Part shown: in pieces, positions 5,348 to 50,729 of the stretch
Layout of the letters: each line of letters opens with the position of its first letter
Numbering within the stretch: position 1 is the stretch's first letter
Virus record (IMG/VR): IMGVR_UViG_2162886007_000107
Location: 172,431 to 236,430 of that record
Strand: one strand, 5' to 3'
DNA length: 64,000 bases
Notes under the pieces: generated by a model
Databases searched by the model: none
Told to the model about the DNA's origin: nothing
Seen by the model: the letters and a program-made list of their open reading frames with translations, nothing else
Translations under genes and position numbers: made by a program

Positions 5348-5650
5348 ATGCCAGAAAGATCTCAATCCTTTCGTCGCCCCTGGATCTTCAAATCAATCGA
5401 CGAGCCAGACATTAACTACGTCTGGTTAGCCGAATACATGGCTCAGCACAACCTGACAATGGAAGTTGCTTTGGAACACCTTTCGCACAAAATGCGAGAG
5501 TTCCTGGAGAAGGGTAAGGAAGTCCTGGAGCAACTGGACGGTAGTAATCCAGACCTGCTCAAGAACTGCGAGGTCTTTGTTGGTAGTTATCAACACGCTG
5601 TAGACTTCTACAGTCCCATTCCGTTGGTGCCGATTATAAAGGAAGAGTAA
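5348..5650 (+). CDS. hypothetical protein, NPxW-motif family
   Basis: INYVWLAEYMAQHNLTMEVALEH; paralog of the next gene. Confidence 0.75.
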   Translation: MPERSQSFRRPWIFKSIDEPDINYVWLAEYMAQHNLTMEVALEHLSHKMREFLEKGKEVLEQLDGSNPDLLKNCEVFVGSYQHAVDFYSPIPLVPIIKEE

Positions 5651-6078
5651 TGTCGGATAAAGACAACAGCCTAGGCTTAGACGACTTTGGTGAGGACCCT
5701 CTTACCAAGCCGGAATTTCTTCGCAAGAAGACTGGTCCTCGTCCAATGCCATGGCTGACGTGGGATAACCCCAAAGTAAACCCCATGTGGTTGGCCGAGT
5801 ATATGCATCAACACGATCTCTCTTTAGAGGTGGCGATGGAGCATTGGGCTGTTCACATGGGGCGCTTCATAAAGCAGCTTACTAAAACGGTAGAGCTGGT
5901 TGAAAGTAGCGACGATAAAACCGTTAACGCCATAAAGGTATTTATCAAAGACCACAAACAAGTCGATGGCTTTTATGGTGAAATGCCTTTGGTTAATGTT
6001 CTCGTTAAGGGTAGCGAATGTCCTGTCCCGTTGAAAAAGAGCTTGCTGCCAGGTTCGAAAAACTCTTCAGAGACTTAG
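5650..6078 (+). CDS. hypothetical protein, NPxW-motif family
   Basis: TAATG overlap; VNPMWLAEYMHQHDLSLEVAMEH. Confidence 0.75.
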   Translation: MSDKDNSLGLDDFGEDPLTKPEFLRKKTGPRPMPWLTWDNPKVNPMWLAEYMHQHDLSLEVAMEHWAVHMGRFIKQLTKTVELVESSDDKTVNAIKVFIKDHKQVDGFYGEMPLVNVLVKGSECPVPLKKSLLPGSKNSSET

Positions 6079-6347
6079 ACCCCAAAAAGGTCGAAGACTT
6101 GATGGAAGAGTTGATTGATCACTACACCTACGGGAAGTATGGGTTGTCTGTGATCAGTGAGGTACGCAAAGTTAAGAAGTTCCAATCTTGCGTATCTATT
6201 CAACCTGTTGCTGAAAAGGCGATCCTCGTAAGCCCCTACGGATTCGAGATCACTTCCGTAACCCAACATCCAAAAGGTGGGGTCCAAGTTATCATGAAGG
6301 AGACTACTCGGAACGAACACATCCGTGAACAAAGCAGTCGAGGTTGA
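6018..6347 (+). CDS. hypothetical protein
   Basis: 109-aa ORF ending just before a hairpin; start codon uncertain. Confidence 0.6.
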   Translation: MSCPVEKELAARFEKLFRDLDPKKVEDLMEELIDHYTYGKYGLSVISEVRKVKKFQSCVSIQPVAEKAILVSPYGFEITSVTQHPKGGVQVIMKETTRNEHIREQSSRG

Positions 6348-6360
6348 GAGCAAGAACTAC

Positions 6361-6400
6361 TCCCTACTCCCCGCTAAGGGAGTAGGGAGGACTATTTGCT
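6361..6400 (+). terminator. terminator-like hairpin
   Basis: TCCCTACTCCC/GGGAGTAGGGA stem. Confidence 0.7.
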
Positions 6401-6418
6401 TTTAAAAGAAACTCAAGC

Positions 6419-6434
6419 CTAAATTATTACGGTA
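6419..6434 (+). promoter_or_regulatory. possible variant early promoter (CTAAATTATTACGGTA)
   Basis: AT-rich, TATATTAC-like sequence between a terminator and the next gene. Confidence 0.35.
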
Positions 6435-6456
6435 AGAACATAACGGAATTTTAATA

Positions 6457-6897
6457 ATGACCATGAGTAAGCGGGACCAGTTATTCAATCAGGTGCTCGG
6501 TGATTTCAAAGAGTTTTTCAAAGTTCCTGTTCGTGATGGCATGGCTGACGCTCCTGTATTGAACGTTAGCAATAACAAGAAGTTTCCTAATCTTAACGGT
6601 CGTCATTTCCTGGCTGGTTATTCCACGCCCAATGATGTGAAGAACCGTGCAGAAGGCATTGCGTTTGTAGAGTACTTCCCTGACAGAATAGGGGTGCTCA
6701 ATGTGCAGTGCATTATTCATATCTCTCCAACATCCGTACCGTCTGATGTATTAGGCTGTGAGGCAGGGGAAGATTCGGATCTTACCATTGGTGAGTGTGT
6801 GGAGTTATTCCGCATCCTGGGGGATTTCCTCACCAATTGGAAAATGGAACGTGAGTTCCTTACATCGGCAATCCCTCCCACTACTACTAAACACTAA
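6457..6897 (+). CDS. hypothetical protein, LxGRxF family
   Basis: PNLNGRHFLA...EGIAFVE. Confidence 0.7.
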   Translation: MTMSKRDQLFNQVLGDFKEFFKVPVRDGMADAPVLNVSNNKKFPNLNGRHFLAGYSTPNDVKNRAEGIAFVEYFPDRIGVLNVQCIIHISPTSVPSDVLGCEAGEDSDLTIGECVELFRILGDFLTNWKMEREFLTSAIPPTTTKH

Positions 6898-6908
6898 GAG
6901 AGTTAATC

Positions 6909-7331
6909 ATGCAAAAGTCTATCGAAGTAACCCAAGAATTCACCTTCGCAGAAGTTTACCGCGACCTGGTCTGGTTCGGTAATGAGTTTCAAAAATGTGC
7001 GGCAGTGAAGTTCGAAGCGAGTGGTGATCCATCCATTCCCGCCGATCTGAGCGGCCGTCAGTTCGTGTTCGAAACCCGCGTCGGTACCAACCGTGCTACT
7101 GGTAAATCTCTTGCCGGCATCCTGATCTACGAGGTCAAAGTCGACGGTCAGGAAGGCGAATACTTTGCCAGTGTTTCTCGCGACCTGGATCTGACAGAAG
7201 ATCCTGAAGTTATCTTCGCTGATCCAGAGAATATGCTGACAGTAGAAAGTGTCGAAATGCTGCTGCTGGTGGTTCAGAAATCGGTAATCGAATTCCGCGG
7301 TGAACTCGACCAACCTAAGGTTGTTCATTAA
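6909..7331 (+). CDS. hypothetical protein, LxGRxF family
   Basis: PADLSGRQFVF...AGILIYE. Confidence 0.75.
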   Translation: MQKSIEVTQEFTFAEVYRDLVWFGNEFQKCAAVKFEASGDPSIPADLSGRQFVFETRVGTNRATGKSLAGILIYEVKVDGQEGEYFASVSRDLDLTEDPEVIFADPENMLTVESVEMLLLVVQKSVIEFRGELDQPKVVH

Positions 7332-7343
7332 GGAGGGGTAGTC

Positions 7344-7757
7344 GTGACTACTTCTGAACCTTTCATCGTGAAATACGCCAAGGACTTCAAACTTTGGCGT
7401 ATCCACAAAACGTTCCTGAATTTCGGCTTGGCTACTCGTACCAAGCCCGAGGTTCGCTTCATGAAGAACAATCAGACTCCAGCTATTCTTCAGGGTCGTG
7501 ATTTTGTCTTCAGTACTGCTGAGGGTCTTGACTCTCAGAATAATAATCGCCCAGTGATCGGTGTACAAATTACAGAACGTATCATGGGCATGGAAGTTGA
7601 TTTGTGCAAGGTTGTGCAGTTCAAAGACGACAGATCGTCACCTGCGGTTGTAATGTTACTCGGTGGTAACGTGTTGGAAGAAGCGTTCATTAAGGACGTT
7701 CTCAAAATTGCTGAAGCAGTTATCCGTAACCATCCGGACTACTTCGACCCTAATTAA
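7344..7757 (+). CDS. hypothetical protein, LxGRxF family
   Basis: AAGGAGG RBS with GTG start; PAILQGRDFVF...IGVQITE. Confidence 0.75.
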   Translation: MTTSEPFIVKYAKDFKLWRIHKTFLNFGLATRTKPEVRFMKNNQTPAILQGRDFVFSTAEGLDSQNNNRPVIGVQITERIMGMEVDLCKVVQFKDDRSSPAVVMLLGGNVLEEAFIKDVLKIAEAVIRNHPDYFDPN

Positions 7758-7768
7758 GGAAGTCACCC

Positions 7769-8203
7769 ATGAAAACCCCTTTCTACGTTATTCAAGCGGA
7801 ATCGCGTGCTCCTGGTGAAAGTGTTACCAAAGTCGGCTATCTGTACGTCGACTCCGAATGCGGTATCGTGTTTGCCGATCGTTTCAACAGCGGTGGTTGG
7901 TTCTACACCACCGAAGCCGCCATGCAGCGCTGGGATTTCATCATGAATGAAGAACCCACCAAGTACACCGCCGGCAGCCTCCCTGGCTATCAGTACGCCA
8001 TCCCTCACGTGTTGCGCAGCGCTGTTGGTGGTCGGATCGATGTAGACGGCCGCTACGAGTTCACGTTCAAGCTGATCGAAGTCATCGGTCCTAGCCTGGA
8101 CAAGATCGAAGTTACCGTGGTTCGTGAGGTGGAAGTTATCGCCATCCAGTTCCACAATGAGTACGACAAGAAACCGATCATCACCATCAACAACATCAAG
8201 TAA
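7769..8203 (+). CDS. hypothetical protein
   Basis: AAGGAAG RBS; strong codon bias. Confidence 0.75.
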   Translation: MKTPFYVIQAESRAPGESVTKVGYLYVDSECGIVFADRFNSGGWFYTTEAAMQRWDFIMNEEPTKYTAGSLPGYQYAIPHVLRSAVGGRIDVDGRYEFTFKLIEVIGPSLDKIEVTVVREVEVIAIQFHNEYDKKPIITINNIK

Positions 8204-8211
8204 GGCTTGTC

Positions 8212-8619
8212 ATGGCTAAGGTATCGTTTAAAGAGATCCACACCAATCTGTCTACTTACATGGAAGCTCGTAAGGAATACCCTGTAGTTACTTTCGAAGA
8301 CAACGAAACTGTTCTTCGTCAGCTGCGTGGTAAAAGTTTCATGTTCGCTGCCATGAAAGGTGAGGACAAGCACAAGAAACCACAACTGGGGATCATGGTC
8401 GTAGAAAAGACCCCAGTTGGTGGTAATCCAGTCTGTGCACTCACTGCGGCCGATAAAGCCAAAGATCGTCGATTCAAAGTGCAGTTCCAAGGCAAACTGC
8501 TGCTGCTGGACGAGGAAGTCAACGTCCTTCTCCAGCAACTGGGTAACCGTATGAAGGCTGCGGCTCTTACCAGTAATCTGGCACAAGGAGCTTCTGATGG
8601 CTCGCAAACAACGCAATAA
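8212..8619 (+). CDS. hypothetical protein, LxGRxF family
   Basis: RQLRGKSFMF...LGIMVVE. Confidence 0.7.
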   Translation: MAKVSFKEIHTNLSTYMEARKEYPVVTFEDNETVLRQLRGKSFMFAAMKGEDKHKKPQLGIMVVEKTPVGGNPVCALTAADKAKDRRFKVQFQGKLLLLDEEVNVLLQQLGNRMKAAALTSNLAQGASDGSQTTQ

Positions 8620-8857
8620 AGAACCGGCTATTACTCGTACTTGCCCAGACGGTACTCTCATTATTTCTCGTGAGTGGATTGGCTGGGTTGTTATCTCTGG
8701 GACTATTGGTCAGTATTCGGGTATTGAAAGTATCCTGGCCTACGCCACTCGTCGTCTCAATGAAGACGGCATTGCCCCAGAAGGCAAGTATGCTTTGGTT
8801 TCTTACGACGGTCGTGCGATCGTTACCTACGTAGATAAAGAGGGAGTTACACCGTGA
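8597..8857 (+). CDS. hypothetical protein
   Basis: AAGGAG RBS; 86 aa. Confidence 0.7.
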   Translation: MARKQRNKEPAITRTCPDGTLIISREWIGWVVISGTIGQYSGIESILAYATRRLNEDGIAPEGKYALVSYDGRAIVTYVDKEGVTP

Positions 8858-9939
8858 CCGCCAAAAAAGCTGCTCGTCGTAATGCTGCAAAAACCCTGGA
8901 TCAGATCAAAGAAGTTTTGTTTATGACTGGGTCTTCTGACGAACAAGTGTTGGAACACATTCGTCAGTTAGAGCATTACCATTTTTACTTGAAAGAACTT
9001 GGTACTGCTGTTGCCACAGATTTGTTTAACGAAAGTACTGTCGTAGGCCGCGCAGAGCTGTTGTTTGGTGACCAAGGTCCATTTAAAGCAATGGCATCTG
9101 GCAATGGTCGTAACCTGAGAATCACCGGCGGTATTCACGGAACTCGTGAACTGGTTAAGGGCTTTGTTCAAATTCTGTCTGAGCATGCGCTGGCAGAGGC
9201 TGAGAAGCCAAAAGACCTTTTCTACGATGCAGCGGATTTCATGATTCGCAACACGCCGTCTGATGATGCAAAGCCTCAGACACTCGGACAAAGGCTTTGG
9301 CTGCTTAATCAAAGCCAAGGAATGTTTGCGCTCATGCACAAGCATCCGTCCATCAGCAGTAATGGTCATGCTGTACTGCGCTTCATTCAAAATGTTGTGG
9401 AGCAGCAGGTCGAAGAAAACAAACAGCTGACCGGACAAATTGCCACGGCTTGTTTGGCATTGGGCCTCAACCCATCAGAACCCAACCGCCTACCAACGGC
9501 ATTGTCGAACCTCACCACTGCGTTGCGGTTACTCAAGCCATTTACTGGAGATCTGACTGCAGCAACAGCAACTTTGAAACCTGCTGAAAGGGTTCTTCCT
9601 GCTGAGCCTGCTGTAATGATGGAACCTTTGAGCGCTGGCTCTCATGGTGTGTTCAAGATCACCCAAGAGTGGTACGACTGGTTCTGGGCTATCGATGATC
9701 TGGATGAAAGCCTCAGCTCCAAGATTCTCGAACGCCAAGGTCGCATGCGTCAAGCCATCGACAAACGTGTCATTGAAAGAATGACGAGCAACAAAGATGG
9801 GTGGCCACGTAACCTTTCCTTGATGGTTAACTTCGAAAGCGAAAAAGCAATGGGTCGTCCTGTTGTTCTTTTCACCGCTCAGGTTAACGACCAGGTCAAT
9901 AAGAACTTTGGTCCGGCCGCTCTGCAACAACAATTTTAA
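8854..9939 (+). CDS. hypothetical protein
   Basis: GTGA overlap; GAGGGAG RBS; 361 aa. Confidence 0.75.
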   Translation: MTAKKAARRNAAKTLDQIKEVLFMTGSSDEQVLEHIRQLEHYHFYLKELGTAVATDLFNESTVVGRAELLFGDQGPFKAMASGNGRNLRITGGIHGTRELVKGFVQILSEHALAEAEKPKDLFYDAADFMIRNTPSDDAKPQTLGQRLWLLNQSQGMFALMHKHPSISSNGHAVLRFIQNVVEQQVEENKQLTGQIATACLALGLNPSEPNRLPTALSNLTTALRLLKPFTGDLTAATATLKPAERVLPAEPAVMMEPLSAGSHGVFKITQEWYDWFWAIDDLDESLSSKILERQGRMRQAIDKRVIERMTSNKDGWPRNLSLMVNFESEKAMGRPVVLFTAQVNDQVNKNFGPAALQQQF

Positions 9940-9955
9940 TCATTAGGAGAATGAT

Positions 9956-10531: not shown

Positions 10532-10542
10532 GGAGAGCTTCT

Positions 10543-11136
10543 GTGACGTTCTATAAAGGTGGCGAGTTGTTACCCCTAACGTTGTATCGGGGAGAAGTAG
10601 ATCACCCCAGTGTCAGCAAGCCACACAGCTTCCCGCGTGCTTTGTACTTCGGTGACTTGGAAACAGCTCATGCTTATTCCGATTACCTGGAAAACTCGGG
10701 CGATTACAAGACCAGTCGTATCTATCCGGTACACATTGTTCTTAAACGCCCATTTATCAATCAACCGGAAGATCCGTTTCTGGATATGCCAGAGATTGTT
10801 AGTCGTCTTGGTCTGGAAGAAGCTCGTCGTATTGCTAAGCGCTTTGCTAAGTACATCGAAGAGACGGATCAATGGCGGTATCGTGTCAATTCAGAAGGTC
10901 GGTATGATGGGGTAGAACATTACCTTGCCTGTCCGCGTTCTGATGTAAACAATCTGTGTTTCCAGGCGTATCGATTCTTCGATAGCCAAATGGAAGTAAA
11001 TCGTTTGAGAAGGTTAGGGTATGACGGTGCGATCCATGCTGGTAGTGGAAGTGGAAGTGCCGGTAAACCCGAGTACTGCGTGTTCAACATCGAACAAGTC
11101 TTTTCCATACCCGGTCAGTCTTTTCTGAGTAAATGA
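10543..11136 (+). CDS. ART-PolyVal-like ADP-ribosyltransferase fold protein
   Basis: Ordered motifs LYRG, ALYFG..ETAHAY, IYPVHIVLKRPF, GYDGAIH and EYCVFNIEQV match the ART-PolyVal pattern. Confidence 0.65.
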   Translation: MTFYKGGELLPLTLYRGEVDHPSVSKPHSFPRALYFGDLETAHAYSDYLENSGDYKTSRIYPVHIVLKRPFINQPEDPFLDMPEIVSRLGLEEARRIAKRFAKYIEETDQWRYRVNSEGRYDGVEHYLACPRSDVNNLCFQAYRFFDSQMEVNRLRRLGYDGAIHAGSGSGSAGKPEYCVFNIEQVFSIPGQSFLSK

Positions 11137-11495
11137 AAATGGCTAATGATGAGGTATATAAAGCGGGGCTTGACGAACCTTCCGTCTTTAGTGGTGATGG
11201 GGAGCAACCAGTCAGTATCCACTGGCTGGCCTGGTACGTCCGTAACAACCATGGGGCTAGCCTCATGGTAGCAATGATCGCTGGCAACAATCTGATCCGT
11301 CAGCTGTGTAGCGAGGGGCTTCGTGCAGTCTGTACCAATAGCGAACCTATCATGTTTGTAGAAGTGTTCATCAATGAGACAGCATTTAGTGTGCCTCGGA
11401 TGGAATGGGTTATCTGGTACGCCAATCTACACAAGGTTGGTTATACCAGCGCTAACTGGGCAGGAAAGCTTCAAAACTATATCACTAACAGGTAA
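11133..11495 (+). CDS. hypothetical protein, NPxW-motif family
   Basis: VSIHWLAWYVRNNHGASLMVA. Confidence 0.7.
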   Translation: MKMANDEVYKAGLDEPSVFSGDGEQPVSIHWLAWYVRNNHGASLMVAMIAGNNLIRQLCSEGLRAVCTNSEPIMFVEVFINETAFSVPRMEWVIWYANLHKVGYTSANWAGKLQNYITNR

Positions 11496-11514
11496 TCAAT
11501 AGGAGGTATCCAGG

Positions 11515-11991
11515 ATGGCTGGCTTTAGTTACATTCCTTTGATCAACGAACCGTGCATGTTTACCGGAGTACGTTTCCGCTTAAACAGGGATTGGGTTTT
11601 CTTCGTTAAACGGTTGGCGGCTGGTATCGCTGTAAACAAAGGTCAGGAAAAGTTTAATGAGAGTGTGAAAGCATTTGAAGAATTCTTTTCGCCAACCATC
11701 CTGGGCTTCAATCAAGACAAATCCCTGCGGTCTCAACACAACTTGCAACACCAACGGGATATGGCTCTCTTTGTGAACAACATGGAGCTGGTTAAGTCGG
11801 GGATGAATGTGATGCACAACATCCATCAAGAGTTGAAAGATGATTTGGATGAAGACGGGTTTGCACAACCAACTTCAATCCTGACCATGGACAAACTCAT
11901 CAGTATGCGTTGGGTGATGCATACTGCTCGCGTAGATCGCATGCTTCCTGAAGAAGCCTATGTGCTTGCTCAGGCTTTAACTAAATCTTAA
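11515..11991 (+). CDS. hypothetical protein
   Basis: AGGAGG RBS; LNRDWVFFV weakly resembles the NPxW motif. Confidence 0.75.
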   Translation: MAGFSYIPLINEPCMFTGVRFRLNRDWVFFVKRLAAGIAVNKGQEKFNESVKAFEEFFSPTILGFNQDKSLRSQHNLQHQRDMALFVNNMELVKSGMNVMHNIHQELKDDLDEDGFAQPTSILTMDKLISMRWVMHTARVDRMLPEEAYVLAQALTKS

Positions 11992-12006
11992 TTAGGGGTA
12001 ACAACC

Positions 12007-13305
12007 GTGTCTGATAAGAATGTAACGAATTCGAACGACCCTGTTGAAAAGATCGAATATTTCGAGGACAAGCTCCACAGTGAGCATCATGTCCACACTG
12101 GATTCGCCAGCATTGCCAAAGCAGCGGATAACTCGCTGTGTGAGCGTGAAGAACTCGCTCTGGGCGATATGTCCGACAACGACCTGGCAAAGGAAGTGCT
12201 CAAGCTGCAAGAGTACCTGCAACTTCCTAGCGGTATTTATTACGGTGAGCTGCTCAAGGCCATTGTTCACCGGCTGCGTTTCCTGAGCGGTCGTCTGCGC
12301 CACTATGAAGGCAAAGAAGTCTTCGACATGGAAGACCCAACTCCAAATTTGGATGCTGCAAGGAAACGAGTTCAGGATTACCTATCGGGCCTTCCCCCAA
12401 CAAACCTCAACGATATTCTTACTCACCCCGGTGGTGGTGATCCACAGCATTTGGTGGACACTGAAGTTGTTTTCAGCTCTCCTGCAATGGAAGCCTTTGT
12501 TCGTGACAATCCTCAGTTGTTGGAGGTTCGTCTTGGCAAGCTGCGGCCACAAGGTACTTTCCATGGTGGACTGTATTACGCGATAGGGAAACCTAATCTC
12601 GATTTCAATGGCGATGGTGAATTCACCATGCCTAAAGCCGGGGAGGATATTGGTCCTGAGTATAAATACGTTTCTGCTCAGTCCACGCTAAACATGTCTC
12701 CTGAATTGCAGAAACTGATTGCCGACTCAGCGCCAAAGTTTGATGGTTCTACTTTGCGTGATATCGGCACGTCACAGACTGTTCATGTTGAAGTCAGCGG
12801 CCCTGGCGCCGACGATCTGGTTCAGTCGGCTAACCTCAAAGACCAGCCTTATCTAGTAAAGGTTGGCACCATGTTGGCGTACACCCATCCAGTAGGCGGT
12901 CTTCTCGTGAGCGACAATTTCGAGAGGACTCGTCGTGACATTCGTAATACACTGGATGCGCAAGCCGACGTATACCGTCGCACCAAAACCATGTTTGATC
13001 GTCTGTGCTTCTTCCTGGGAATTCAGGATAAAGAAAACCTAGGGGCAATTGCTCACAAGTTAGTCGAGAAACACAACGCCACTGGTGAAGGAGTGTTCGT
13101 AGTACTTCGTGCGGCTGCGCTCATGGACGGTAAAGCATCTCTCGAAGAAGCTGATAAATGCTACTTTGAGTTGCGCGATCTGGTACTGGCTATCAATCCA
13201 GGTTACGGCAAAGAGCCTAAGTACGACGCCAAGAATAGCCACGAGAGTTTCTTCAAAACAATCGTGCTCCCTTTTCCTGAAACTGGTAACGAGGAGAAGC
13301 CATAA
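12007..13305 (+). CDS. hypothetical multidomain protein
   Basis: 432 aa; N-terminal REEL..DMSDNDLA...RLRFLSGR segment shared with 44389. Confidence 0.75.
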   Translation: MSDKNVTNSNDPVEKIEYFEDKLHSEHHVHTGFASIAKAADNSLCEREELALGDMSDNDLAKEVLKLQEYLQLPSGIYYGELLKAIVHRLRFLSGRLRHYEGKEVFDMEDPTPNLDAARKRVQDYLSGLPPTNLNDILTHPGGGDPQHLVDTEVVFSSPAMEAFVRDNPQLLEVRLGKLRPQGTFHGGLYYAIGKPNLDFNGDGEFTMPKAGEDIGPEYKYVSAQSTLNMSPELQKLIADSAPKFDGSTLRDIGTSQTVHVEVSGPGADDLVQSANLKDQPYLVKVGTMLAYTHPVGGLLVSDNFERTRRDIRNTLDAQADVYRRTKTMFDRLCFFLGIQDKENLGAIAHKLVEKHNATGEGVFVVLRAAALMDGKASLEEADKCYFELRDLVLAINPGYGKEPKYDAKNSHESFFKTIVLPFPETGNEEKP

Positions 13306-13655
13306 TGGCTGATATCAACCCTGCTGCTGAACTGCCAAAACGCAATGCGGTTGTTTATCCTGTGGGTCGTGATCCAGAAGGTAAGCAGATCTGGTCTGTA
13401 AGTGTTCTCGGTCATTGCACTCTCAACCGTGCTCTGATGACCGAGATCTCGGCAGACGCCTGCGGAGAAGTAGAAAACGTTGTTTGGGCTACCGAACCTC
13501 CTCTTGTTGATGGGACAACTCTCAACAAGGATTGGTTGGTATGGTGTATGTCTACTCACCACATTGGTGAAGACGAAGCCAGGCACGAAGGCCATCGTCG
13601 ATTGCAGTTCTTTCAGTTCTGCGCCATTGCACGAGAAAGAAGCAATGGACAGTAA
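13305..13655 (+). CDS. hypothetical protein, NPxW-motif family
   Basis: TAATG overlap; LNKDWLVWCM. Confidence 0.7.
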   Translation: MADINPAAELPKRNAVVYPVGRDPEGKQIWSVSVLGHCTLNRALMTEISADACGEVENVVWATEPPLVDGTTLNKDWLVWCMSTHHIGEDEARHEGHRRLQFFQFCAIARERSNGQ

Positions 13656-13950
13656 AGAACCCACCTTGGAAGGTAGCCTTCGCGGTGGAATGAGTAAGTC
13701 CTGGGTGGAGTGGTATCGTGCTCAAGGCTACTCGTTATTGGAAGCTCGTGAAGAAGCCTTACGTCGCCTTGAACTTAAACGCGATAAAGCGGCTGAATTG
13801 GCTTCTAACAAACCGGAACCTTCCCTGCTCAATATTCATGGAAGAAAAAATCCGGAATGGGTGCGGTGGTATCGCGATAAAAATGGGGTAACTTTACTTG
13901 AGGCTTTGAATGCTCAGGTTAGTCGTATTTCTCAACTGAACAAGCAATAA
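13645..13950 (+). CDS. hypothetical protein with two NPxW-motif repeats
   Basis: SWVEWYRAQGYSLLEA and NPEWVRWYRDKNGVTLLEA. Confidence 0.75.
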   Translation: MDSKEPTLEGSLRGGMSKSWVEWYRAQGYSLLEAREEALRRLELKRDKAAELASNKPEPSLLNIHGRKNPEWVRWYRDKNGVTLLEALNAQVSRISQLNKQ

Positions 13951-13958
13951 ATATGCTG

Positions 13959-13993
13959 CTGTCAGGCTCCTCCGGGGGCCTGGCAGTCTTTTC
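13959..13993 (+). terminator. terminator-like hairpin
   Basis: CTGTCAGGCTCC/GGGGCCTGGCAG stem (G-U pairs) followed by TCTTTT. Confidence 0.65.
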
Positions 13994-14013
13994 TGTCAAA
14001 TGGGGGAATTGTT

Positions 14014-14574
14014 ATGCCGGATATGGTTAAAGGTGGGTTAATTGTTGCGTTTGCTGTTGGTCTGTTTTTCTTTTTCCGTTGGCTGATGAAACCGGAACCA
14101 GCGCTCAAGAAACGCGCTGAAGAATTCAATCGTCAATATGAGGAAGCCCAAGGCTACCCAACTGACGAACAACAACAACCGATCTACGACGAGCGTAAAG
14201 AAAAGGTTCGAGATCCAGTACCTGCTTTCCGTGAAGGTTATCCGCAACACCGTACTCGTTCCAACCCTCCTCCTCGCCCTAGTACTCCACCGCCACCTCC
14301 AGGTATGCGTGAAGGCAGTGGTCGTGAAGTACCTCTGACTTCTTCGCGTGATCGTGCTCGTGGTCTGCACCATCATCAACATTCTCGCGTATCCCATGAT
14401 GACAACATGGGTACCGGCGTAATGATGGGTATGATGTTATCCAGTAACAACCACAGCTCTCCTAGCCAGAGTGCGTGCTCTCCTTCACCTTCCTACGACC
14501 GCGACAGTCGTGCGGATGACAATCGTTGCGACGACAATAACAGCAGCTCTTCCAGCAACGATTCGAGTGATTAA
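14014..14574 (+). CDS. membrane-anchored protein with Pro-rich region and Ser/Asp-rich tail
   Basis: N-terminal TM segment; PPPRPSTPPPPP; low-complexity C-terminus. Confidence 0.7.
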   Translation: MPDMVKGGLIVAFAVGLFFFFRWLMKPEPALKKRAEEFNRQYEEAQGYPTDEQQQPIYDERKEKVRDPVPAFREGYPQHRTRSNPPPRPSTPPPPPGMREGSGREVPLTSSRDRARGLHHHQHSRVSHDDNMGTGVMMGMMLSSNNHSSPSQSACSPSPSYDRDSRADDNRCDDNNSSSSSNDSSD

Positions 14575-14579
14575 CCGTC

Positions 14580-14849
14580 ATGGAAAACGATGAAGAGATT
14601 GAAAAGCTCCCGACTGCTGCTAAAGTAATTTTGTGGGTACTGTTTCTTTGTTTGTGCGTGGCTTTGCGTAGTTGTTACGTTGATGCCAGGAAAGTAGCCG
14701 ACGATCCCAATGTTGGGGTGGCTGCCGATCTGAAGCGTTTGAAGATGAGTACTTGTTCTAATGAGTACGACACTCCTCAATGCCGTGAAGATCAGGCTGC
14801 TCGTAGAGCCGAAGCTTACGAAAAAGACAAGCACTTAATGGATAAGTAA
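14580..14849 (+). CDS. small membrane protein, Cx8C-loop family (1)
   Basis: TM followed by CSNEYDTPQC. Confidence 0.7.
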   Translation: MENDEEIEKLPTAAKVILWVLFLCLCVALRSCYVDARKVADDPNVGVAADLKRLKMSTCSNEYDTPQCREDQAARRAEAYEKDKHLMDK

Positions 14850-14851
14850 TT

Positions 14852-15109
14852 ATGTGGGACAGCAGTGGAGGTGGTGGGGTGAGCAATTCAAGTAGGTTGA
14901 ACTGTAAAGAAGGACTCGGCCTTTTGGGTGTGTTTTCCTTTATCGGTGCAATAATTTATGGTGCCTGTTATTTGCAGGATATAGAAAACCAAGATCGTTG
15001 CATGGGTAAATACAACACCTCCGCTTGCTTTGAGCTTAAAGCTAAAGAAGCTAAAGCCAAAGAAGAATACCTGTTAAAGGTTGAGGGACTTCGTAATGGA
15101 AGTAGTTAA
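14852..15109 (+). CDS. small membrane protein, Cx8C-loop family (2)
   Basis: TM followed by CMGKYNTSAC. Confidence 0.7.
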   Translation: MWDSSGGGGVSNSSRLNCKEGLGLLGVFSFIGAIIYGACYLQDIENQDRCMGKYNTSACFELKAKEAKAKEEYLLKVEGLRNGSS

Positions 15110-15203
15110 AATTGTTTTTGCTGTGCTTCTGGTAGTTATGTTTGTGGACCTGGCAGTTGATAGTTTCCGGGAACATCCCACTTGTTGCGAAGAAGATGAT
15201 TAA
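15096..15203 (+). CDS. small hydrophobic peptide (35 aa)
   Basis: Read manually as MEVVKIVFAVLLVVMFVDLAVDSFREHPTCCEEDD; GAGGGA RBS; fills the gap. Confidence 0.5.
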   Translation: MEVVKIVFAVLLVVMFVDLAVDSFREHPTCCEEDD

Positions 15204-15212
15204 GGGGTAGCA

Positions 15213-15452
15213 ATGAAATCTCTGACTCAAGCATCGTTAAAAGACGGTGTGGTCGTATGTTTGAAAATGGTCGTTATGATTACAGCGGCTTTTGCAATTG
15301 TTTTTGGTGCCGAGCATCTGCGTGACCGTATCAAGGATCAACGCGGCGGGTTTAACGACCAGAACTGCGTGGGTAGTTTCAACACTATCCCTTGCCACCA
15401 GATGAAGATCAACCAGCTCCTCAAAGAGCGGGATCTAAAAGGAGTCCAGTAA
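15213..15452 (+). CDS. small membrane protein, Cx8C-loop family (3)
   Basis: TM followed by CVGSFNTIPC. Confidence 0.7.
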   Translation: MKSLTQASLKDGVVVCLKMVVMITAAFAIVFGAEHLRDRIKDQRGGFNDQNCVGSFNTIPCHQMKINQLLKERDLKGVQ

Positions 15453-15733
15453 TGGGCGATTGGTTTAAAAACTGGTGTGGTATAAACAAACCTGTCGTAG
15501 TCGGCATTATTTGTGTCGTCGTGATCGGGGCACCCATTATGTATTGGGTATCTAAAGCAGTGGATAATTTCCAAGCTGCTAACCGGCAGATTATTGCGCG
15601 TAATAACGCAAGTAATTGCCAAGGACAGTGGCGCACTATCGAGTGCTATCAGTTCAAGATTGACCAGCTCAAACTGGAGCAATCCTACCAGGAGGTTCTC
15701 AATGCAAAACAACCTGGTAAAAGCGCCAATTGA
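15452..15733 (+). CDS. small membrane protein, Cx8C-loop family (4)
   Basis: TAATG overlap; TM followed by CQGQWRTIEC. Confidence 0.7.
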   Translation: MGDWFKNWCGINKPVVVGIICVVVIGAPIMYWVSKAVDNFQAANRQIIARNNASNCQGQWRTIECYQFKIDQLKLEQSYQEVLNAKQPGKSAN

Positions 15734-15989
15734 AGGTGAGTATTTAGCCAAGGGCGAGTATTGTCGTGACGAGGTCACCGTTGATATGGCTGACCTATTC
15801 CGAACTGTTATTGTCCATTCAGAAGAATCTTTCTGCCAATGGAAAAAGACAGAAAGCACACCTAAGCCTAAGCCCACTTTCATGAGTAAGGTAAAGGCAA
15901 ACCCTTGGCCGTATGTTTTGTTCTGCATGCAAATGTTCTGGCCAACTGTTTTAGTAGTCTGGTTAATCTTTCGACAGTTCTGGAGATAA
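15702..15989 (+). CDS. small protein with C-terminal TM segment
   Basis: GGAGG RBS before ATG 15702. Confidence 0.6.
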   Translation: MQNNLVKAPIEGEYLAKGEYCRDEVTVDMADLFRTVIVHSEESFCQWKKTESTPKPKPTFMSKVKANPWPYVLFCMQMFWPTVLVVWLIFRQFWR

Positions 15990-15991
15990 CT

Positions 15992-16486
15992 ATGGCAATT
16001 GACATGAGGGAGTTTCCTATGGTAGCTAATACCCTGCCTCCACCTGATGGGTTGGTTGGTCGCGTATATCCGGGTCATCAATACCGGCGTCCGCCTCCAC
16101 CAGCTCCTCCGCCTCCTAAAGGCGGGTTTCATGACGTGCCTTGGCCTCCAGTGCCTCCAAGGCTTGGTGAGAAGACAGATATCATTCCGCCAGCTCCTGT
16201 GAAAAGGCTGGAACTTACTTTGCCTCCACCATGGGAGCGTAAGAAAATGATAGTCAATCGTGAAAAAGAAAAGCCACCCACTCTCATTGCTTGGTTGGGG
16301 CTTATTGTAGGTATTGTTACCTTCAGTTGGCTGATGGCATTGGGTATGGAAAAGCAACAGAAGGATGTTTCCGACTGGGCTAAGGGTTTTGATTATCGTC
16401 ACTGTTGGGGTAAGTTCGACACTCCGGCTTGTCATGAACGCAAGGCTAAAGAAAATGCTGAAGCCTACAAAAATTACAAGGACTAA
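15992..16486 (+). CDS. Pro-rich membrane protein, Cx8C-loop family (5)
   Basis: Poly-Pro N-terminus, TM, then CWGKFDTPAC. Confidence 0.7.
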   Translation: MAIDMREFPMVANTLPPPDGLVGRVYPGHQYRRPPPPAPPPPKGGFHDVPWPPVPPRLGEKTDIIPPAPVKRLELTLPPPWERKKMIVNREKEKPPTLIAWLGLIVGIVTFSWLMALGMEKQQKDVSDWAKGFDYRHCWGKFDTPACHERKAKENAEAYKNYKD

Positions 16487-16489
16487 GTA

Positions 16490-17575: not shown

Positions 17576-17591
17576 TCAAGGAAATGAACGA

Positions 17592-18161
17592 ATGAAAATT
17601 GTCGGTATTGTTTTTGGTGTGCTGCTGGCCTTTGCGGTTGTAGCCGGTGGTTCTGTGTTCCTGGCTTACCAGTCGATGTATGACACCGCGGTAGGCTTCG
17701 AGAACAACATCAAGAAGCTGGACAAGCAAAGTGAAGCTTCGCTGTCGTCCACTACCATCAAGATCCAGAACGCTGTGGGTCTGACCGCTCAATACACCGA
17801 ATCCCTCAAGGAAGTGGTGCGTGCTGCGGTCGAAGGCCGTTACGGTAAGGACGGTAGTAAAGCTACCATGCAGTGGATCCAGGAACAAAATCCGGTTTAC
17901 GATTCGAAAGTGATTCTGAAAGTTCAAGACATCATCGATGGTGGTGGTAGTGAATTCAAGATCACTCAGGATCGCAAGATCGAAGAATGTACCAAATACG
18001 AAACTTCTCGTGATTCCCTGGTTCGTGGCTTCTTCCTGCGCCTGGCTGGCTTCCCGAAGAAAGACGTCGAAGACATGTGTAAAGTGATCTCCGACGCTTC
18101 CACTCGTGAGGCCTTCTCGACTGGTCTGCAAAAACCAGTGATTCAAGCACCAAGCAAGTAA
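17592..18161 (+). CDS. LemA-like membrane-anchored coiled-coil protein
   Basis: N-terminal TM; YDTAVGFENNI and EQNPVYDS...KVQDII...KYE...FFLRLAGFP resemble the LemA pattern. Confidence 0.6.
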   Translation: MKIVGIVFGVLLAFAVVAGGSVFLAYQSMYDTAVGFENNIKKLDKQSEASLSSTTIKIQNAVGLTAQYTESLKEVVRAAVEGRYGKDGSKATMQWIQEQNPVYDSKVILKVQDIIDGGGSEFKITQDRKIEECTKYETSRDSLVRGFFLRLAGFPKKDVEDMCKVISDASTREAFSTGLQKPVIQAPSK

Positions 18162-18172
18162 TACCGCAGTAA

Positions 18173-18212
18173 ACTACCTAGAGGGTCTGGCCCTCTAGGT
18201 AGTATTTATTTT
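18173..18212 (+). terminator. intrinsic terminator
   Basis: ACTACCTAGAGGG/CCCTCTAGGTAGT stem plus ATTTATTTT. Confidence 0.8.
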
Positions 18213-18236
18213 CTTAACCAAAAGAGTACTTTGTTT

Positions 18237-18704
18237 ATGAATGCACTAATACAGCGAGCTAAAGATTACCTTTTTGGTAAAACCACTGTCGAGAAGATCC
18301 CTTCCTACGACAAAGAACAAATCAACAAGGAACTGGCAGTAGAGTTACAAGAAACGCTCAAGGTCGATCTGATCATGCAAGCCAAGACCGTTCCGTTATC
18401 AACGCTGGACGGCAAGCCAAACCCACAATGGGTAAAGATCTTCAAGCTGGGATTCCCCAACCTGCTCGAAGAAGAAATCAAAGCCAAGCAACTGGAACTT
18501 ATCCAGGCGGAAGTTGCAATCATCGATGCCTTCCTCGATAAGGAAGATGTCGAGGTAGATGACAGTTGGATCGACGACCTGAACCCCGAAGTCAAGATGG
18601 ACGACCTGGGTTACTGGCATGTGAAGATCAACGGTCAGTGGTGCGCTATCGCCAGTAGTACGGCAAGCGGCCACTCCATCAGAGACACGTTGTTCAATCG
18701 ATAA
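18237..18704 (+). CDS. hypothetical protein
   Basis: About 155 aa; GKPNPQWVK motif. Confidence 0.7.
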   Translation: MNALIQRAKDYLFGKTTVEKIPSYDKEQINKELAVELQETLKVDLIMQAKTVPLSTLDGKPNPQWVKIFKLGFPNLLEEEIKAKQLELIQAEVAIIDAFLDKEDVEVDDSWIDDLNPEVKMDDLGYWHVKINGQWCAIASSTASGHSIRDTLFNR

Positions 18705-18718
18705 GCAATACCAGGGCA

Positions 18719-18746
18719 CTCCTAACCTCCGCAAGGAGGTTAGGAG
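18719..18746. terminator. hairpin between convergent genes
   Basis: CTCCTAACCTCC-GCAA-GGAGGTTAGGAG. Confidence 0.75.
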
Positions 18747-18769
18747 CATCTGATATATTATTTTTTACT

Positions 18770-19480
18770 TTAGAAAGGTTGTGGGGTGTAATCACCAACA
18801 TATCTGGCAAAGTTAGAAAAACGAATACGTCCGAAGTTACCTGGATAGCAACGGTTCGTGGCGTTAAAGTACCCAAGATACATTTTGGTAACTGTAGGTA
18901 AAGCTTGGGTTTTATTAAAAAGACTTTGTTTGGTGCCGTTAACTGTACCGTTCTCTAAGAGTTGTCTTACTCCATTTAACATTACAAAAAAGTAACTTCC
19001 TTTACGTACCAAAGCCCAGCGATTAAGTTGACCAATTACTTGGGTTTTAGTAGAGCTTGGTCTCCAGATACGAGCATTGTTCCAATCAGAGGCGTTGAAC
19101 TGATTACGTTCTTGGTACCCGCCATCTGTCCAACGGCAACCTATCGGAAAACCTGCGGTATTAGTGATATCCATGAAAAGCTCAGTCGCATAACCTGACT
19201 GGTAAGCGTTCCAAATAGACGACCATTCCAAGGTCCAATTCTGCATAGTCTCTAAATCTAATGCCGTCGGTAATGTAATTAGGACACCAGAGTTAACCGA
19301 AGAAGTTTTAAGAGTGGATTGCCCGTCAATTAAAACAGCGGGGTCTACTTCAGTAGCTGTTTTAATTGCACCTACAACCGTGTCGCTAATCAAATCTTTA
19401 TTTGTAGCGGGGTCGTATAAAAAGAGGACGTCACCAGTTTGGGGTTCTTCTGCCTTGGTACCTCCAAGAAGCTCGATCAT
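18770..19480 (-). CDS. putative virion protein, ConA/LamG-like lectin fold
   Basis: MIELLGG start; WTLEW, LNRWALVRKGSYFFVMLNG and FGRIRFSNFARY are typical of LamG-like domains. Confidence 0.6.
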   Translation of the reverse strand: MIELLGGTKAEEPQTGDVLFLYDPATNKDLISDTVVGAIKTATEVDPAVLIDGQSTLKTSSVNSGVLITLPTALDLETMQNWTLEWSSIWNAYQSGYATELFMDITNTAGFPIGCRWTDGGYQERNQFNASDWNNARIWRPSSTKTQVIGQLNRWALVRKGSYFFVMLNGVRQLLENGTVNGTKQSLFNKTQALPTVTKMYLGYFNATNRCYPGNFGRIRFSNFARYVGDYTPQPF

Positions 19481-19528
19481 GTTATTTCTCACTAGGGTAG
19501 GTATAAATGGGACATCCCATAAAGTTGC

Positions 19529-19568
19529 CTTAACTCTTGAAAAAATTCAAACCTAGATTATTAGGGTA
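19529..19568 (+). promoter_or_regulatory. variant early promoter (CTTAACTC...CTAGATTATTAGGGTA)
   Basis: Same spacing of the TTAAC element and core as the canonical copies. Confidence 0.5.
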
Positions 19569-19586
19569 ACAGTACAAGAGGTAATT

Positions 19587-20186
19587 ATGAACATTAACGA
19601 ACTGCGCGTCGAAATTGTCAAAGAATTTTCCCCTGTATGGGAACTTAACGATAGAGCCCATCGAGTTGAACATTTTGAAGAAGTGTTCAACTGTGGTGTA
19701 GCAATCAACGAAAAGCTGAATCTGGGTTTCGATCCAAAGTTGATTCTCTTTGCTGCTTATTTCCACGATATGTTTGCGTGGAGTCGTAACAATCATCATG
19801 AACTCAGTTTTCACTGGATGATGTCTACGGATAACAAGTTGATTCTGGATAACTTGAATCCTCGTGAAACAATGATTGTGGCGTGGGGTTGTCAGCAACA
19901 TCGTGCTTCGTTTAAAGGCAACTTCAAAAGCGTGTTCTGCGAACTGATCAATTCTGCTGATCGTGGTTTTCCTGGTGACGTTGGGGCTATGTTGAATCGA
20001 GCTGTTCAATTCAGGGAGAAGAAATTTCCCGAGATGACACCGGGTGAACGTGTAGCAGGTGCTGTAAATCACCTGAAAGAAAAGTACGGTACTGGAGGTT
20101 ATGCTCGCTATACCGAAATGTATTTGGAAGTGTTCGGTGATCAGCTTTATCAACAGCGCGCTGATATAGACACTTTGCATTGTTAA
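19587..20186 (+). CDS. HD-domain phosphohydrolase
   Basis: H...H (AHRVEH), FHD, QHR and NSAD metal-binding pattern. Confidence 0.8.
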   Translation: MNINELRVEIVKEFSPVWELNDRAHRVEHFEEVFNCGVAINEKLNLGFDPKLILFAAYFHDMFAWSRNNHHELSFHWMMSTDNKLILDNLNPRETMIVAWGCQQHRASFKGNFKSVFCELINSADRGFPGDVGAMLNRAVQFREKKFPEMTPGERVAGAVNHLKEKYGTGGYARYTEMYLEVFGDQLYQQRADIDTLHC

Positions 20187-20196
20187 GGAGATTATT

Positions 20197-20736
20197 TTGA
20201 ACAAATGGCCAGCTCCTCTTCCTCGTCACCCGCACGTAACCAACCATTTTCCTCAGATGGATCTTCGTGCAATGATGCCTATTATCGAAATCGATAAAGA
20301 AGGGTATCCTGTTAACAGCGGTTTTAGCTTTCTGTCTGGTGTGCAGGCTGACGCAGAAAAAGCTACCAAGAATCGCCCTCTGCAAATCGGGAAGACTGTA
20401 GTCCCTCCATTCGATCCATTCCATGATCACCTGACTACATTGATCCTCAAAGATCCTCAGGTTATGTGGCATGTTAATCGGCTGAACGCATTGCAAGAAA
20501 TTTCACAGACTCCTCTTGGCTATATGTGTAAAAACATGGCCAAGTCGTTCATTAAAGATTTCTGTGGCGAAAATCAGTTGCGGCAAATGTCTGCAAGGTC
20601 CAGCTGGATAATCTCGGATGAAGAAGCAAGTAAGTTGCGTGATGTTCTCACGCATCCTACTCCTTACGTATGTCCTTACCCTGATACGCAAGTATTGGGA
20701 TATGACAGATTCGGTACACCTAAAAAGGATAGTTAA
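20197..20736 (+). CDS. hypothetical protein
   Basis: AAGGAG RBS with TTG start. Confidence 0.65.
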   Translation: MNKWPAPLPRHPHVTNHFPQMDLRAMMPIIEIDKEGYPVNSGFSFLSGVQADAEKATKNRPLQIGKTVVPPFDPFHDHLTTLILKDPQVMWHVNRLNALQEISQTPLGYMCKNMAKSFIKDFCGENQLRQMSARSSWIISDEEASKLRDVLTHPTPYVCPYPDTQVLGYDRFGTPKKDS

Positions 20737-20738
20737 TT

Positions 20739-21182
20739 ATGACTCGTATGCGTAATGTAATTCGTGGTGCTGATAAAGATGTTTTTGATAAAGCTTTCGA
20801 CGCTTTTAACAAAGACGCCCAAATCGCAAAAGGTGAGTTTTATATCAGTGGTATCGTCGCCACCGGTGACGTTACCCGGCATTTCATTCTGGAAGGCCTG
20901 GAGCTACGTCGTGAAACCAAGGACCGCATAATGTCTGCTATCGAAGCTAACCGTTATAAGCCTTCGATAGTAGAGGTAAATAATGCAAAAAATCATTTGG
21001 GACGGCTCAACGATATCGCTAAAGGTCTGGGCGGAGCGACTCATTTGATTAAGTCTTCCGCAAAGATCGTTGCTAAAGGCTCCATGGATAAACTGGGCCA
21101 TGATGAGCCGGTACAAAGTGTTACTCGGAACATCGGGGAACTGGAAGCCACCATCCGTGGCGTTAAACAGTGTTTCCACTAA
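20739..21182 (+). CDS. hypothetical protein
   Basis: AAGGA RBS; 147 aa. Confidence 0.7.
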   Translation: MTRMRNVIRGADKDVFDKAFDAFNKDAQIAKGEFYISGIVATGDVTRHFILEGLELRRETKDRIMSAIEANRYKPSIVEVNNAKNHLGRLNDIAKGLGGATHLIKSSAKIVAKGSMDKLGHDEPVQSVTRNIGELEATIRGVKQCFH

Positions 21183-21199
21183 GTCTCGGGGAGTTTTAA

Positions 21200-21520
21200 A
21201 TGACCGAGGGTGACAAGCCAGAACCTATTCTGATCTCCTCTAAAGGAGAAATGAATACGCAAGCCTGGTGTGCATGGCATCGTGAAAAGTTCAAGAGTAC
21301 TGTCCATCGGGCTCAGATGGCTTTCAATGAGAAAGTCCAGTGCATGCCTGAGCCCGAGATGATCCTTAAAGGAAACAAGGTTAATCCTGTCTGGGTCAAA
21401 TGGTATCGCATGCGCAAAAAGGTTTCTACTAACGTCGCAATATCTGTAGCCCGCAGAAGGCAAACGGCTATTGCAGAAGGTAGAAAACCATTGGAAGAAC
21501 ACCTTACAGCCTGGTGGTAA
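21200..21520 (+). CDS. hypothetical protein, NPxW-motif family
   Basis: KVNPVWVKWYRMRKKVSTNVA. Confidence 0.7.
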   Translation: MTEGDKPEPILISSKGEMNTQAWCAWHREKFKSTVHRAQMAFNEKVQCMPEPEMILKGNKVNPVWVKWYRMRKKVSTNVAISVARRRQTAIAEGRKPLEEHLTAWW

Positions 21521-21522
21521 AT

Positions 21523-21891
21523 ATGCGTGACCATAAACATTTCAAAGGTCCCCTGCCAGTTTTTAATCTGGTTCTTACAGAAGAGATGAAGGAAATTATG
21601 GATAAGAATACTCCGGCAGAAGCTTACGCAAAAGGTCTGCTTGATCCTGAAAAAGTTCAGGCAGTTGAAGTTGATCTCAGTGGGTTCAACGTCAGCCGTC
21701 ACGTCAACTATGAGTCGGCCAAGCAACACGGTTTCGAAGGCACGCCTCATCGCTGGGAGCAAGTCAAGCACAAATACGCTACTGACATGCTCGAAAAGTT
21801 TGGTCCAGATCACCGTATCGATTTCAACAATCTGTTGATCGGTACCGATAACTGGTTTGAATTCCCACCGGAACATCAACAAGGGTTCTGA
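21523..21891 (+). CDS. hypothetical protein
   Basis: Operon packing; 122 aa. Confidence 0.65.
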   Translation: MRDHKHFKGPLPVFNLVLTEEMKEIMDKNTPAEAYAKGLLDPEKVQAVEVDLSGFNVSRHVNYESAKQHGFEGTPHRWEQVKHKYATDMLEKFGPDHRIDFNNLLIGTDNWFEFPPEHQQGF

Positions 21892-21893
21892 TC

Positions 21894-22517
21894 ATGAATC
21901 TGCAAGACATTGTGAACGCAACTCTCCTCGGCACTTTCCAAGGTAACCGTGAGGAATTTGCTCTCGACTGCTTTAAGAAGTACGAAGTTGAAGAACCGGC
22001 CTTGTTTCTCAAGAAGCACGTCTCTGTCAACCAGTGGTGGGTTCTTTGGTACATGGCAAAGAACGACGTAGACCGCTTCAAAGCAGCCATGGCCATCATG
22101 CCCCGTTGTAAGGAACTGGCTGCCGATCCAAAAGCCTTTCACTGGTTGCGTCGCCATTGCCAACAGCGTCTGGCTCTTCGTAACCGGATCAAACGCCAGT
22201 ACCAAGCACTGAAAGAAGGGGGTTCTGGCATACCGCTAGATGACATGGTGGAAAATGCGCTTGGGGAACGCATGACCAAGAAAGATAACTTTGAAACAGA
22301 AATCATCTTCCAGGCCGATCTGGTTCCTAAGCATCGTTTCAAGCTTACGGACATGCATGGAGGCAAAGGCGTGATCGTTAAGGTTATCCCTAATGATCAA
22401 CTCCCGAAAGACCGCAATGGCAAGGTTGCGGACATTACCCTCCACGACTACCCGTCTTCTCCGTTCCGTCGTCCTGAAGGCGACAGCTGGATTAGCAATC
22501 TTCCCCGCAAGAAATAA
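21894..22517 (+). CDS. NPxW-family protein fused to an RNA polymerase beta-like fragment
   Basis: VNQWWVLWYM in the N-terminal half; C-terminal FKLTDMHGGKGVIVKVIPNDQLPKDRNGKVADI. Confidence 0.7.
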   Translation: MNLQDIVNATLLGTFQGNREEFALDCFKKYEVEEPALFLKKHVSVNQWWVLWYMAKNDVDRFKAAMAIMPRCKELAADPKAFHWLRRHCQQRLALRNRIKRQYQALKEGGSGIPLDDMVENALGERMTKKDNFETEIIFQADLVPKHRFKLTDMHGGKGVIVKVIPNDQLPKDRNGKVADITLHDYPSSPFRRPEGDSWISNLPRKK

Positions 22518-49536: not shown

Positions 49537-49546
49537 GAAATGGCAC

Positions 49547-50008: not shown

Positions 50009-50031
50009 TAAGCTCCGTGCAAGTGTTCGGT

Positions 50032-50661: not shown

Positions 50662-50680
50662 GGTAAAACTCCTTCAGGAC

Positions 50681-50707: not shown

Positions 50708-50729
50708 ACCTGTTTACTTAAGCGCTTTA

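Follow-up and report, generated by a model that had tools for sequence, protein, structure and literature searches.

A small protein module shared by short genes of an EL-related jumbo phage and its relatives

Domains of the ribosomal stalk protein bL12 have been described in phages, where they are mobile within larger proteins and 30–40% identical to cellular bL12 (PMC6375957). Here we describe a protein module of about 42 residues that recurs in small genes of the virus record IMGVR_UViG_2162886007_000107, within a 64-kb stretch (hereafter the window) that forms the terminal part of this 236,430-bp record, judged complete. The module resembles the phage bL12 domains in being small, mobile and variably placed in larger phage proteins, but its units do not reach the identity to cellular bL12 seen for those domains (PMC6375957).

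The phage carrying the window is a relative of Pseudomonas phage EL. The tail-fibre proteins of the two phages are 53% identical, and their gene order agrees over a stretch that extends from the genes for DHH phosphoesterase and RNA ligase to the GroEL-like and tail genes. As EL annotation includes a nuclear shell protein, the PhuZ tubulin and split RNA polymerase subunits, the window phage is presumably an EL-like, nucleus-forming jumbo phage. Synteny places the module genes in a stretch of ~19 kb (window ~3.2–22.5 kb) that corresponds to only ~4.4 kb in EL, and this stretch is a lineage-specific expansion of small plus-strand genes. A megablast search of the region against phages gave no match. 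Near-identical DNA was found in soil and indoor metagenomes, and rhizosphere and plant metagenome runs contained smaller shares of the sequence words of the window phage. Standard reading of the genes sufficed, with no other genetic code required.

Definition of the module and relatedness of its copies

The full unit of ~42 residues reads (P)EPxL-x4-G-x2-NPxW[VI]xWY[RK]-x3-G[VC][ST]LxEA-x6-[RK]I. A regular expression for its core, W-[VLICW]-x-[WE]-[YHC], was run over the 236,430-bp genome and returned 10 matches in seven real plus-strand genes, all at window positions 5423–22038. Matches in the other 172 kb of the genome fell in short non-coding frames only. The 10 copies are confined to genes at window 5348–22517 and are absent from all other coding frames of the 236-kb genome.

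The units are short, and pairwise identity among them is just 17–37%, as might be expected if the motif recurred by chance or composition in non-homologous proteins. Relatedness was assessed with leave-one-gene-out hidden Markov models (HMMs). These ranked the omitted gene first of 3,667 six-frame open reading frames (ORFs) for six of the seven genes (E 1e-3 to 8e-9); g13305 alone failed, a miss that also fits chance recurrence. Against it stands an HMM built from non-window proteins only, which detected g21894 (E 7e-7), g13305 (9e-7) and g5650 (8e-5) at significant levels and g5348 at 0.03. None of these four genes was ever used as a search query, making their scores independent. The genes g13645, g21200 and g11133 seeded the search, and their E values of 1e-20 to 1e-27 are partly circular. 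In an alignment of 88 units, the element (P)EPxL-x4-G was conserved upstream of the W-x-x-W-Y motif, window copies included. It had not been used to choose the copies, and its conservation therefore provides independent support for the family. The confident predicted structure, in agreement with an independent model of EL gp133 in BFVD, likewise argues against chance recurrence, which we regard as exceedingly improbable. The module is thus a real, previously unnamed protein module.

By sequence comparison the family comprises seven firm genes, with an eighth (g11515) likely and a ninth (g18231) doubtful; these last two gave HMM E values of 0.13 and 0.08, respectively. The L005 orthologue of g11515 scored better (E 0.004; L005 is the closest relative of the window phage, with flanking genes at 60–72% identity), and the C-terminal repeat of g11515 aligned to repeat 2 of the g11133 family (hhalign P 2.5e-5, probability 75%). 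The gene is likely a paralogue of the adjacent g11133 whose two units have decayed. The g18231 protein shares just 'PLxTLDGKPNPxW' (hhalign P 2e-4 over 21 columns) and is an orthologue of EL gp142 (blastp 1e-11). A preliminary description of the window had proposed a family of at least eight proteins with an NPxW(V/L)xWY motif. We found the motif in every gene that it listed, along with a second copy in g11133, and the significant scores of never-queried g21894, g13305 and g5650 bear out the grouping under one HMM. The count holds as seven firm genes and one likely gene, whereas g18231 has only the hairpin and helix cap in common with the others.

Carrier genes, relatives and mobility

The module genes are listed in Table 1. 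Among them, g5348 and g5650 are full-length paralogues (blastp 1e-18), and an orthologue of g5348 is present in L005. The g11133 start overlaps the stop of the ADP-ribosyltransferase (ART)-like gene g10543 by 4 nt, and g13645 overlaps g13305 by 11 nt. Metagenome strain variants were mostly synonymous (11 synonymous and 5 nonsynonymous for g11133), with none at the W/W/Y positions, and the module genes are therefore under purifying selection.

Table 1. Module genes of the window, with positions of the units within each gene
Gene	Length (aa)	Window position	Strand	Units and other features
g5348	100	5348..5650	+	One module, ~5411-5497, WLAEY form; C-terminal region common with g5650
g5650	142	5650..6078	+	One module, 5773-5853; external-only HMM E 8e-5
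g11133	120	11133..11495	+	Two modules, 11172-11303 and 11391-11468, with a long linker between; HMM E 3.5e-20
g11515	158	11515..11991	+	Degenerate two-module protein (likely member); N-terminal 'EPCMFTG...RDWVFF' 11548-11598, C-terminal 'MRWVMH'
g13305	116	13305..13655	+	N-terminal domain 'VYPVGRDPEGK...' and one module, 13494-13607, WLVWC form
g13645	101	13645..13950	+	Free-standing tandem pair, 13654-13773 and 13813-13935; HMM E 5e-27
g18231	~155	18237..18704	+	Doubtful relative; only hairpin and helix-cap part alike, 18393-18437
g21200	106	21200..21520	+	Tandem pair, 21218-21346 and 21347-21460, and conserved C-terminal '...EHLTAWW' tail; HMM E 4e-25
g21894	207	21894..22517	+	One module, 21990-22100, then basic stretch, then ~60-residue RNA polymerase beta segment

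Relatives were sought exhaustively with a profile of g13645, g21200 and g11133 against 1.84 billion proteins (E ≤ 1e-3). This gave 43 proteins, two of which were low-complexity junk, leaving ~41 true relatives. None is annotated with a name, all carry the same unit together with the EPxL...G element, and several are located on contigs of 223–243 kb. They fall into four groups: the g21200/EL gp133 type, the g13645 type, the g11133 type (P0003, P0011, P0013, P0037, P0040, P0042 and P0044) and proteins with three or four units. At the C-terminus, the g21200/EL gp133 type has a conserved tail, '(K)EH-x3-[WY]W' (window 21461–21520; P0002, P0005, P0012, P0016, P0023 and P0036), which looks like a separate short docking peptide. 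The 20-kb stretches of three related uncultured phages held 4–8 module genes each.

Among described phages, EL carries the module in gp133 (YP_418166, UniProt Q2Z0U8), a two-unit orthologue of g21200 (tblastn 5e-7, HMM 1e-28), and in gp084 (YP_418117, Q2Z0Z7), which has one C-terminal module (HMM E 1e-8); gp092 is a doubtful carrier. Both gp133 and gp084 are annotated 'hypothetical protein', and these true relatives bring no described function with them. No literature on EL gp133 or on early paralogues of Elvirus was found. A search of g21200 against EL-like phages by tblastn gave 2e-7. In the Pseudomonas phage PaBG, of another genus (NC_022096), an unannotated 117-codon ORF contains a clear module (E 1.2e-13). 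It lies on the minus strand between gp018 and gp017 (L095 5785–6138, corresponding to NC_022096 ~10738–11091) and is a gene missed in the public record. The contig that bears P0020 belongs to another type of phage. When g21200, g13645 and g11133 were searched by tblastn against all 50,697 phage records, only EL-like phages and PaBG were matched, and g11133 gave no match to phages. A word-based protein search with g13645 found the query itself only, and a sequence profile search of the PDB gave 0 hits. Scans of the nine window proteins and ten fused relatives against Pfam and PHROGs revealed no above-threshold family covering the module.

The EL genome has two or three module genes, compared with 7–9 genes and 10 copies in the window phage, which supports the earlier view of the module as expanded. 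Its description as reusable is supported too: units are found as tandem pairs or one at a time, next to either end of unrelated domains, and the partners differ even between the window phage and L005. The L005 homologue of g12007 (P0039) ends in a tandem module pair. In the window phage, g12007 has no modules, and the pair is encoded on its own by g13645, which lies downstream of g13305. An N-terminal domain of the g13305 type is joined to one unit in the window phage and L005, and to two in P0014, P0021 and P0024. In g21894 the module lies close to the N-terminus and precedes a 60-residue segment copied from the RNA polymerase beta of the phage itself; the L005 protein at this position has a C-terminal module behind an unrelated N-terminal domain and lacks the RNA polymerase fragment. 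With partners that change between close relatives, the module behaves as an autonomous, portable domain.

The proposed fusion to an RNA polymerase-like fragment was also substantiated. Residues ~138–193 of g21894 are 44% identical to the phage's own beta gene (genome 87790–87954, outside the window), and the segment matches phrog_3295 at 5.6e-15. The copy covers the conserved 'GxKGV...DI' segment of RNA polymerase beta and also resembles EL gp038. It may serve as a decoy or spare part, or be left over from a duplication.

Predicted structure and likeness to bL12 and EF-Ts

Structures were predicted with AlphaFold for the tandem proteins g13645 (3 sequences; predicted local distance difference test score, pLDDT, 78) and g21200 (24 sequences; pLDDT 89.5, predicted template-modelling score, pTM, 0.75). 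The predicted unit consists of a short hairpin bearing 'EPxL...G', an 'NP'-capped helix of 11–12 residues with W-[VI]-x-W-Y-[RK], a tight three-residue turn ('G-[VC]-[ST]') and a second helix of 13–17 residues ('LxEA...RI'). The high pTM suggests that the two units of a tandem pair would pack into one compact body. In a Foldseek search of BFVD, the g21200 model agreed with the independent model of EL gp133 (template-modelling score, TM, 0.70/0.82), and EL gp133 and gp084 were the sole matches. The hydrophobic pattern of the first helix (i, i+1, i+3, i+4) indicates that W/W/Y most likely form a folding core rather than a contact face. Foldseek of the g13645 and g21200 models against the PDB gave nothing below E 1. 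A shape search of the Atlas reached a TM of at most 0.46, and a feature search a score of at most 0.80.

Two translation proteins contain a comparable helix-turn-helix. Factor binding by helices 4–5 of bL12 involves V66, I69, K70, R73, L80 and E82, and the N-terminal (UBA-like) domain of elongation factor Ts (EF-Ts), a compact three-helix bundle, shares with bL12 the helix-turn-helix motif '[VI]K-x-[LV]R-x2-TG-x-G'. The module could accordingly be a pared-down mimic of the EF-Ts motif or of the first half (strand, helix 4 and helix 5) of the bL12 C-terminal domain (CTD), or be remotely derived from one of them. Phage proteins that carry it would then exploit or inhibit host translation by binding the G domain of translational GTPases (EF-Tu, EF-G, IF2).

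Several results favour this idea. The pattern G-x6-[VI]-x3-R-x3-G-h-[SG]-L-x-E-A is co-linear with bL12 residues 62–83 at identical spacing, and the module shares with the bL12 CTD (PF00542) the order of strand, loop with G, helix, 'TG-x-G'-type turn and helix (helices 4–5). Equivalents of I69, R73, G77, L80, E82 and A83 occur frequently in the g13645/PaBG/P0020 type; outside it they vary. The Pfam Ribosomal_L12 model matched P0020 exactly at the module (E 0.0023, 18.7 bits, the best in the family). An L12-CTD HMM built from 80 bacterial sequences was run on 49 module proteins and 7,027 background ORFs, and ranked P0020 first, the PaBG ORF second and P0015 fifth among the 7,076 sequences. In the reverse search, L12 proteins ranked 2nd and 5th–13th of 7,107. 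Alignment of the g13645-type subfamily to the L12 CTD with hhalign gave P 0.0015 over 25–36 columns, a value inflated because the subfamily had been picked partly for its L12-like turn. An L12-CTD cluster was among the 30 nearest Atlas models (TM 0.42). Mobile bL12 domains borne by phages are, moreover, already described (PMC6375957).

Other results speak against it. With the whole family, hhalign against the L12 CTD was not significant (P 0.06–0.1, probability below 1%). No module protein reached the Pfam gathering cut-off for PF00542 (25.9 bits), and no match to this family was seen for any window protein or elsewhere in the window-phage genome. The second half of the CTD (strand, helix, strand) is absent from the module, whose models show a hairpin-helix-helix per unit in place of the full strand-helix-helix-strand-helix-strand fold. 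The module also has W/W/Y where the bL12 CTD has small core residues, and equivalents of the K and E residues are absent from most copies. Neither a bL12 chain nor an EF-Ts N-domain structure was among the Foldseek and VIA matches. An N-terminal dimerisation and uL10-binding domain with flexible hinge, as in bL12, was seen in no module protein, and an HMM of full-length L12 proteins aligned at helices 4–5 only. Given the non-significant whole-family alignment, the missed thresholds and the absent half of the fold, the module is not a member of the bL12 CTD family; the likeness is co-linear but weak. The resemblance to bL12 and EF-Ts put forward in the preliminary description survives, then, as a shared pattern that is statistically visible in a subset of copies, and fails for the family as a whole, at the Pfam cut-off and at the level of fold. 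Mimicry of bL12 or EF-Ts is in our judgement improbable. A more elaborate form of it is quite improbable. In this form, the module would be a minimal version of the factor-binding helix-turn-helix of bL12/EF-Ts, descended from it or mimicking it and built around a tryptophan core. Nucleus-forming Pseudomonas jumbo phages would have multiplied it to tether effectors (the neighbouring ADP-ribosyltransferase-like protein, the RNA polymerase beta fragment and others) to the ribosomal stalk or to translational GTPases of the host, as a modular kit for the takeover of host translation.

Possible functions of the module

We give about even odds to the module being a portable docking or pairing domain. 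This reading is favoured because the module is portable across partners, is kept as tandem pairs and lies in genes under purifying selection. It would serve as a common handle for otherwise unrelated small phage proteins, with single units pairing with another unit or with a shared partner. Duplication of the module and its movement from gene to gene took place within a clade of jumbo phages of the Pseudomonas type (EL, PaBG and uncultured phages of 220–245 kb). The exposed helix-turn-helix face that is co-linear with bL12 helices 4–5 is the only specific lead to a partner.

A number of observations weigh against a docking or pairing role. No known fold or family match in Pfam, PHROGs, the PDB or the Atlas gives the module a functional anchor. 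The suggested pairing of single units is extrapolated from the compact tandem model. A complex prediction of g5348 with g5650 scored 0.01, which gives no answer and counts as evidence neither way. The net charge of the units ranges from −4 to +8, which makes one common target doubtful. The idea of a binding module aimed at a single host or phage surface is not borne out: the charge spread argues against one target, and the W/W/Y pattern resembles a folding core.

Two other roles were weighed. The unit might instead be a stable folding scaffold or self-association domain lacking a shared external partner, each paralogue having its own function. Conservation focused on core-type positions, the wide variation in surface charge and flanking domains, and the predicted packing of tandem units all fit such a scaffold. 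On the other side, the unit has been kept repeatedly on many different, unrelated partners and moves as a cassette between close relatives, as is more usual for a domain that contributes its own function, and we think a scaffold unlikely. Alternatively, the unit may be a helix-turn-helix-like nucleic-acid-binding element, the tandem proteins being small DNA- or RNA-binding regulators. Like classic helix-turn-helix DNA-binding motifs, it has two helices, a glycine-containing tight turn and a Ser/Thr helix cap, and for the gp133 type this option is kept alive by a second unit that is strongly basic. In contrast to those motifs, the module has no third helix, no family match (family models for tri-helical or winged helix-turn-helix domains did not recognise it) and a mixed charge. 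The spread from −4 to +8 argues against nucleic-acid binding as a general role, and the helix-turn-helix reading seems distinctly unlikely.

Neighbouring genes and significance

Other features of the region were recorded alongside the module genes. The g10543 protein (window 10543–11136, 197 aa) gave a sub-threshold match to the ADP-ribosyltransferase family ART-PolyVal (E 1.4e-4, 23 bits against a cut-off of 31). The g10543–g11133 pair is conserved in L005 (72% identity) and was not found in EL or at other loci, so that linkage of the module to the ART-like gene extends to this closest relative only. Contigs from an RNA-seq library cover parts of g10543–g11515 and g13305, possibly owing to DNA carry-over. 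One short, high-depth soil-metagenome contig (run X1) joins 11084 to 11221 and 11248 to 13338 (region to 13403), with sides of 27–28 letters. Probably it arose as an artefact of assembly or derives from another phage; it is not taken as evidence of rearrangement.

The EL-type promoter word was not enriched in the window (10 occurrences versus 7.8 expected). The 19-nt EL 'putative phage promoter' (T-rich, AAACCTA[GT]ATTA, GGGTA) was present on the plus strand in intergenic DNA at 19549, 30521 and 46434, upstream of an HD-domain gene, the GroEL-like gene and the gene at 46505, respectively. None of these sites precedes the module genes at 5.3–14 kb, and 19549 is the sole copy within the module span. 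The promoter word thus lends no support to the early timing proposed in the preliminary description.

Paralogy is not limited to the module genes. An array of five similar-sized genes (135–146 aa) at window 6457–8619 is also present in L005; the genes at 6909, 7344 and 8212 are mutually related (phmmer ~1e-6 in a five-sequence set), and those at 6457 and 7769 not clearly so. Five paralogous small single-pass membrane proteins occupy window 14580–16486 (14580, 14852, 15213, 15392 and 15905). They share a C-terminal C-x-G-x-[FY]-[ND]-T-x2-C-x3-K (jackhmmer E 1e-8 to 1e-21) and are preceded by a Pro- and Ser-rich membrane protein at 14014. On the minus strand at 48199–56516, four paralogous tail-fibre-like genes (48199, 50032, 51399 and 55260; blastp 1e-7 to 1e-56) adjoin a gene for a 1,193-aa tail fibre.

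The majority of small genes in nucleus-forming jumbo phages lack annotation. With a sequence definition, a confident model and a census of the module, 7–9 such orphan genes of the window phage are now linked, and the family also takes in two orphan EL genes and the unannotated PaBG ORF. The small domain defined here constitutes a new family in jumbo phages, with a function that is open to testing in EL and PaBG. As EL is cultivable, this function can be tested directly in Pseudomonas aeruginosa. The movement of the module as a cassette between close relatives offers a clear case of domains being shuffled among phage proteins of unknown function. If the weak likeness to bL12 and EF-Ts is functional, it would point to a new way for phages to engage host translation factors.

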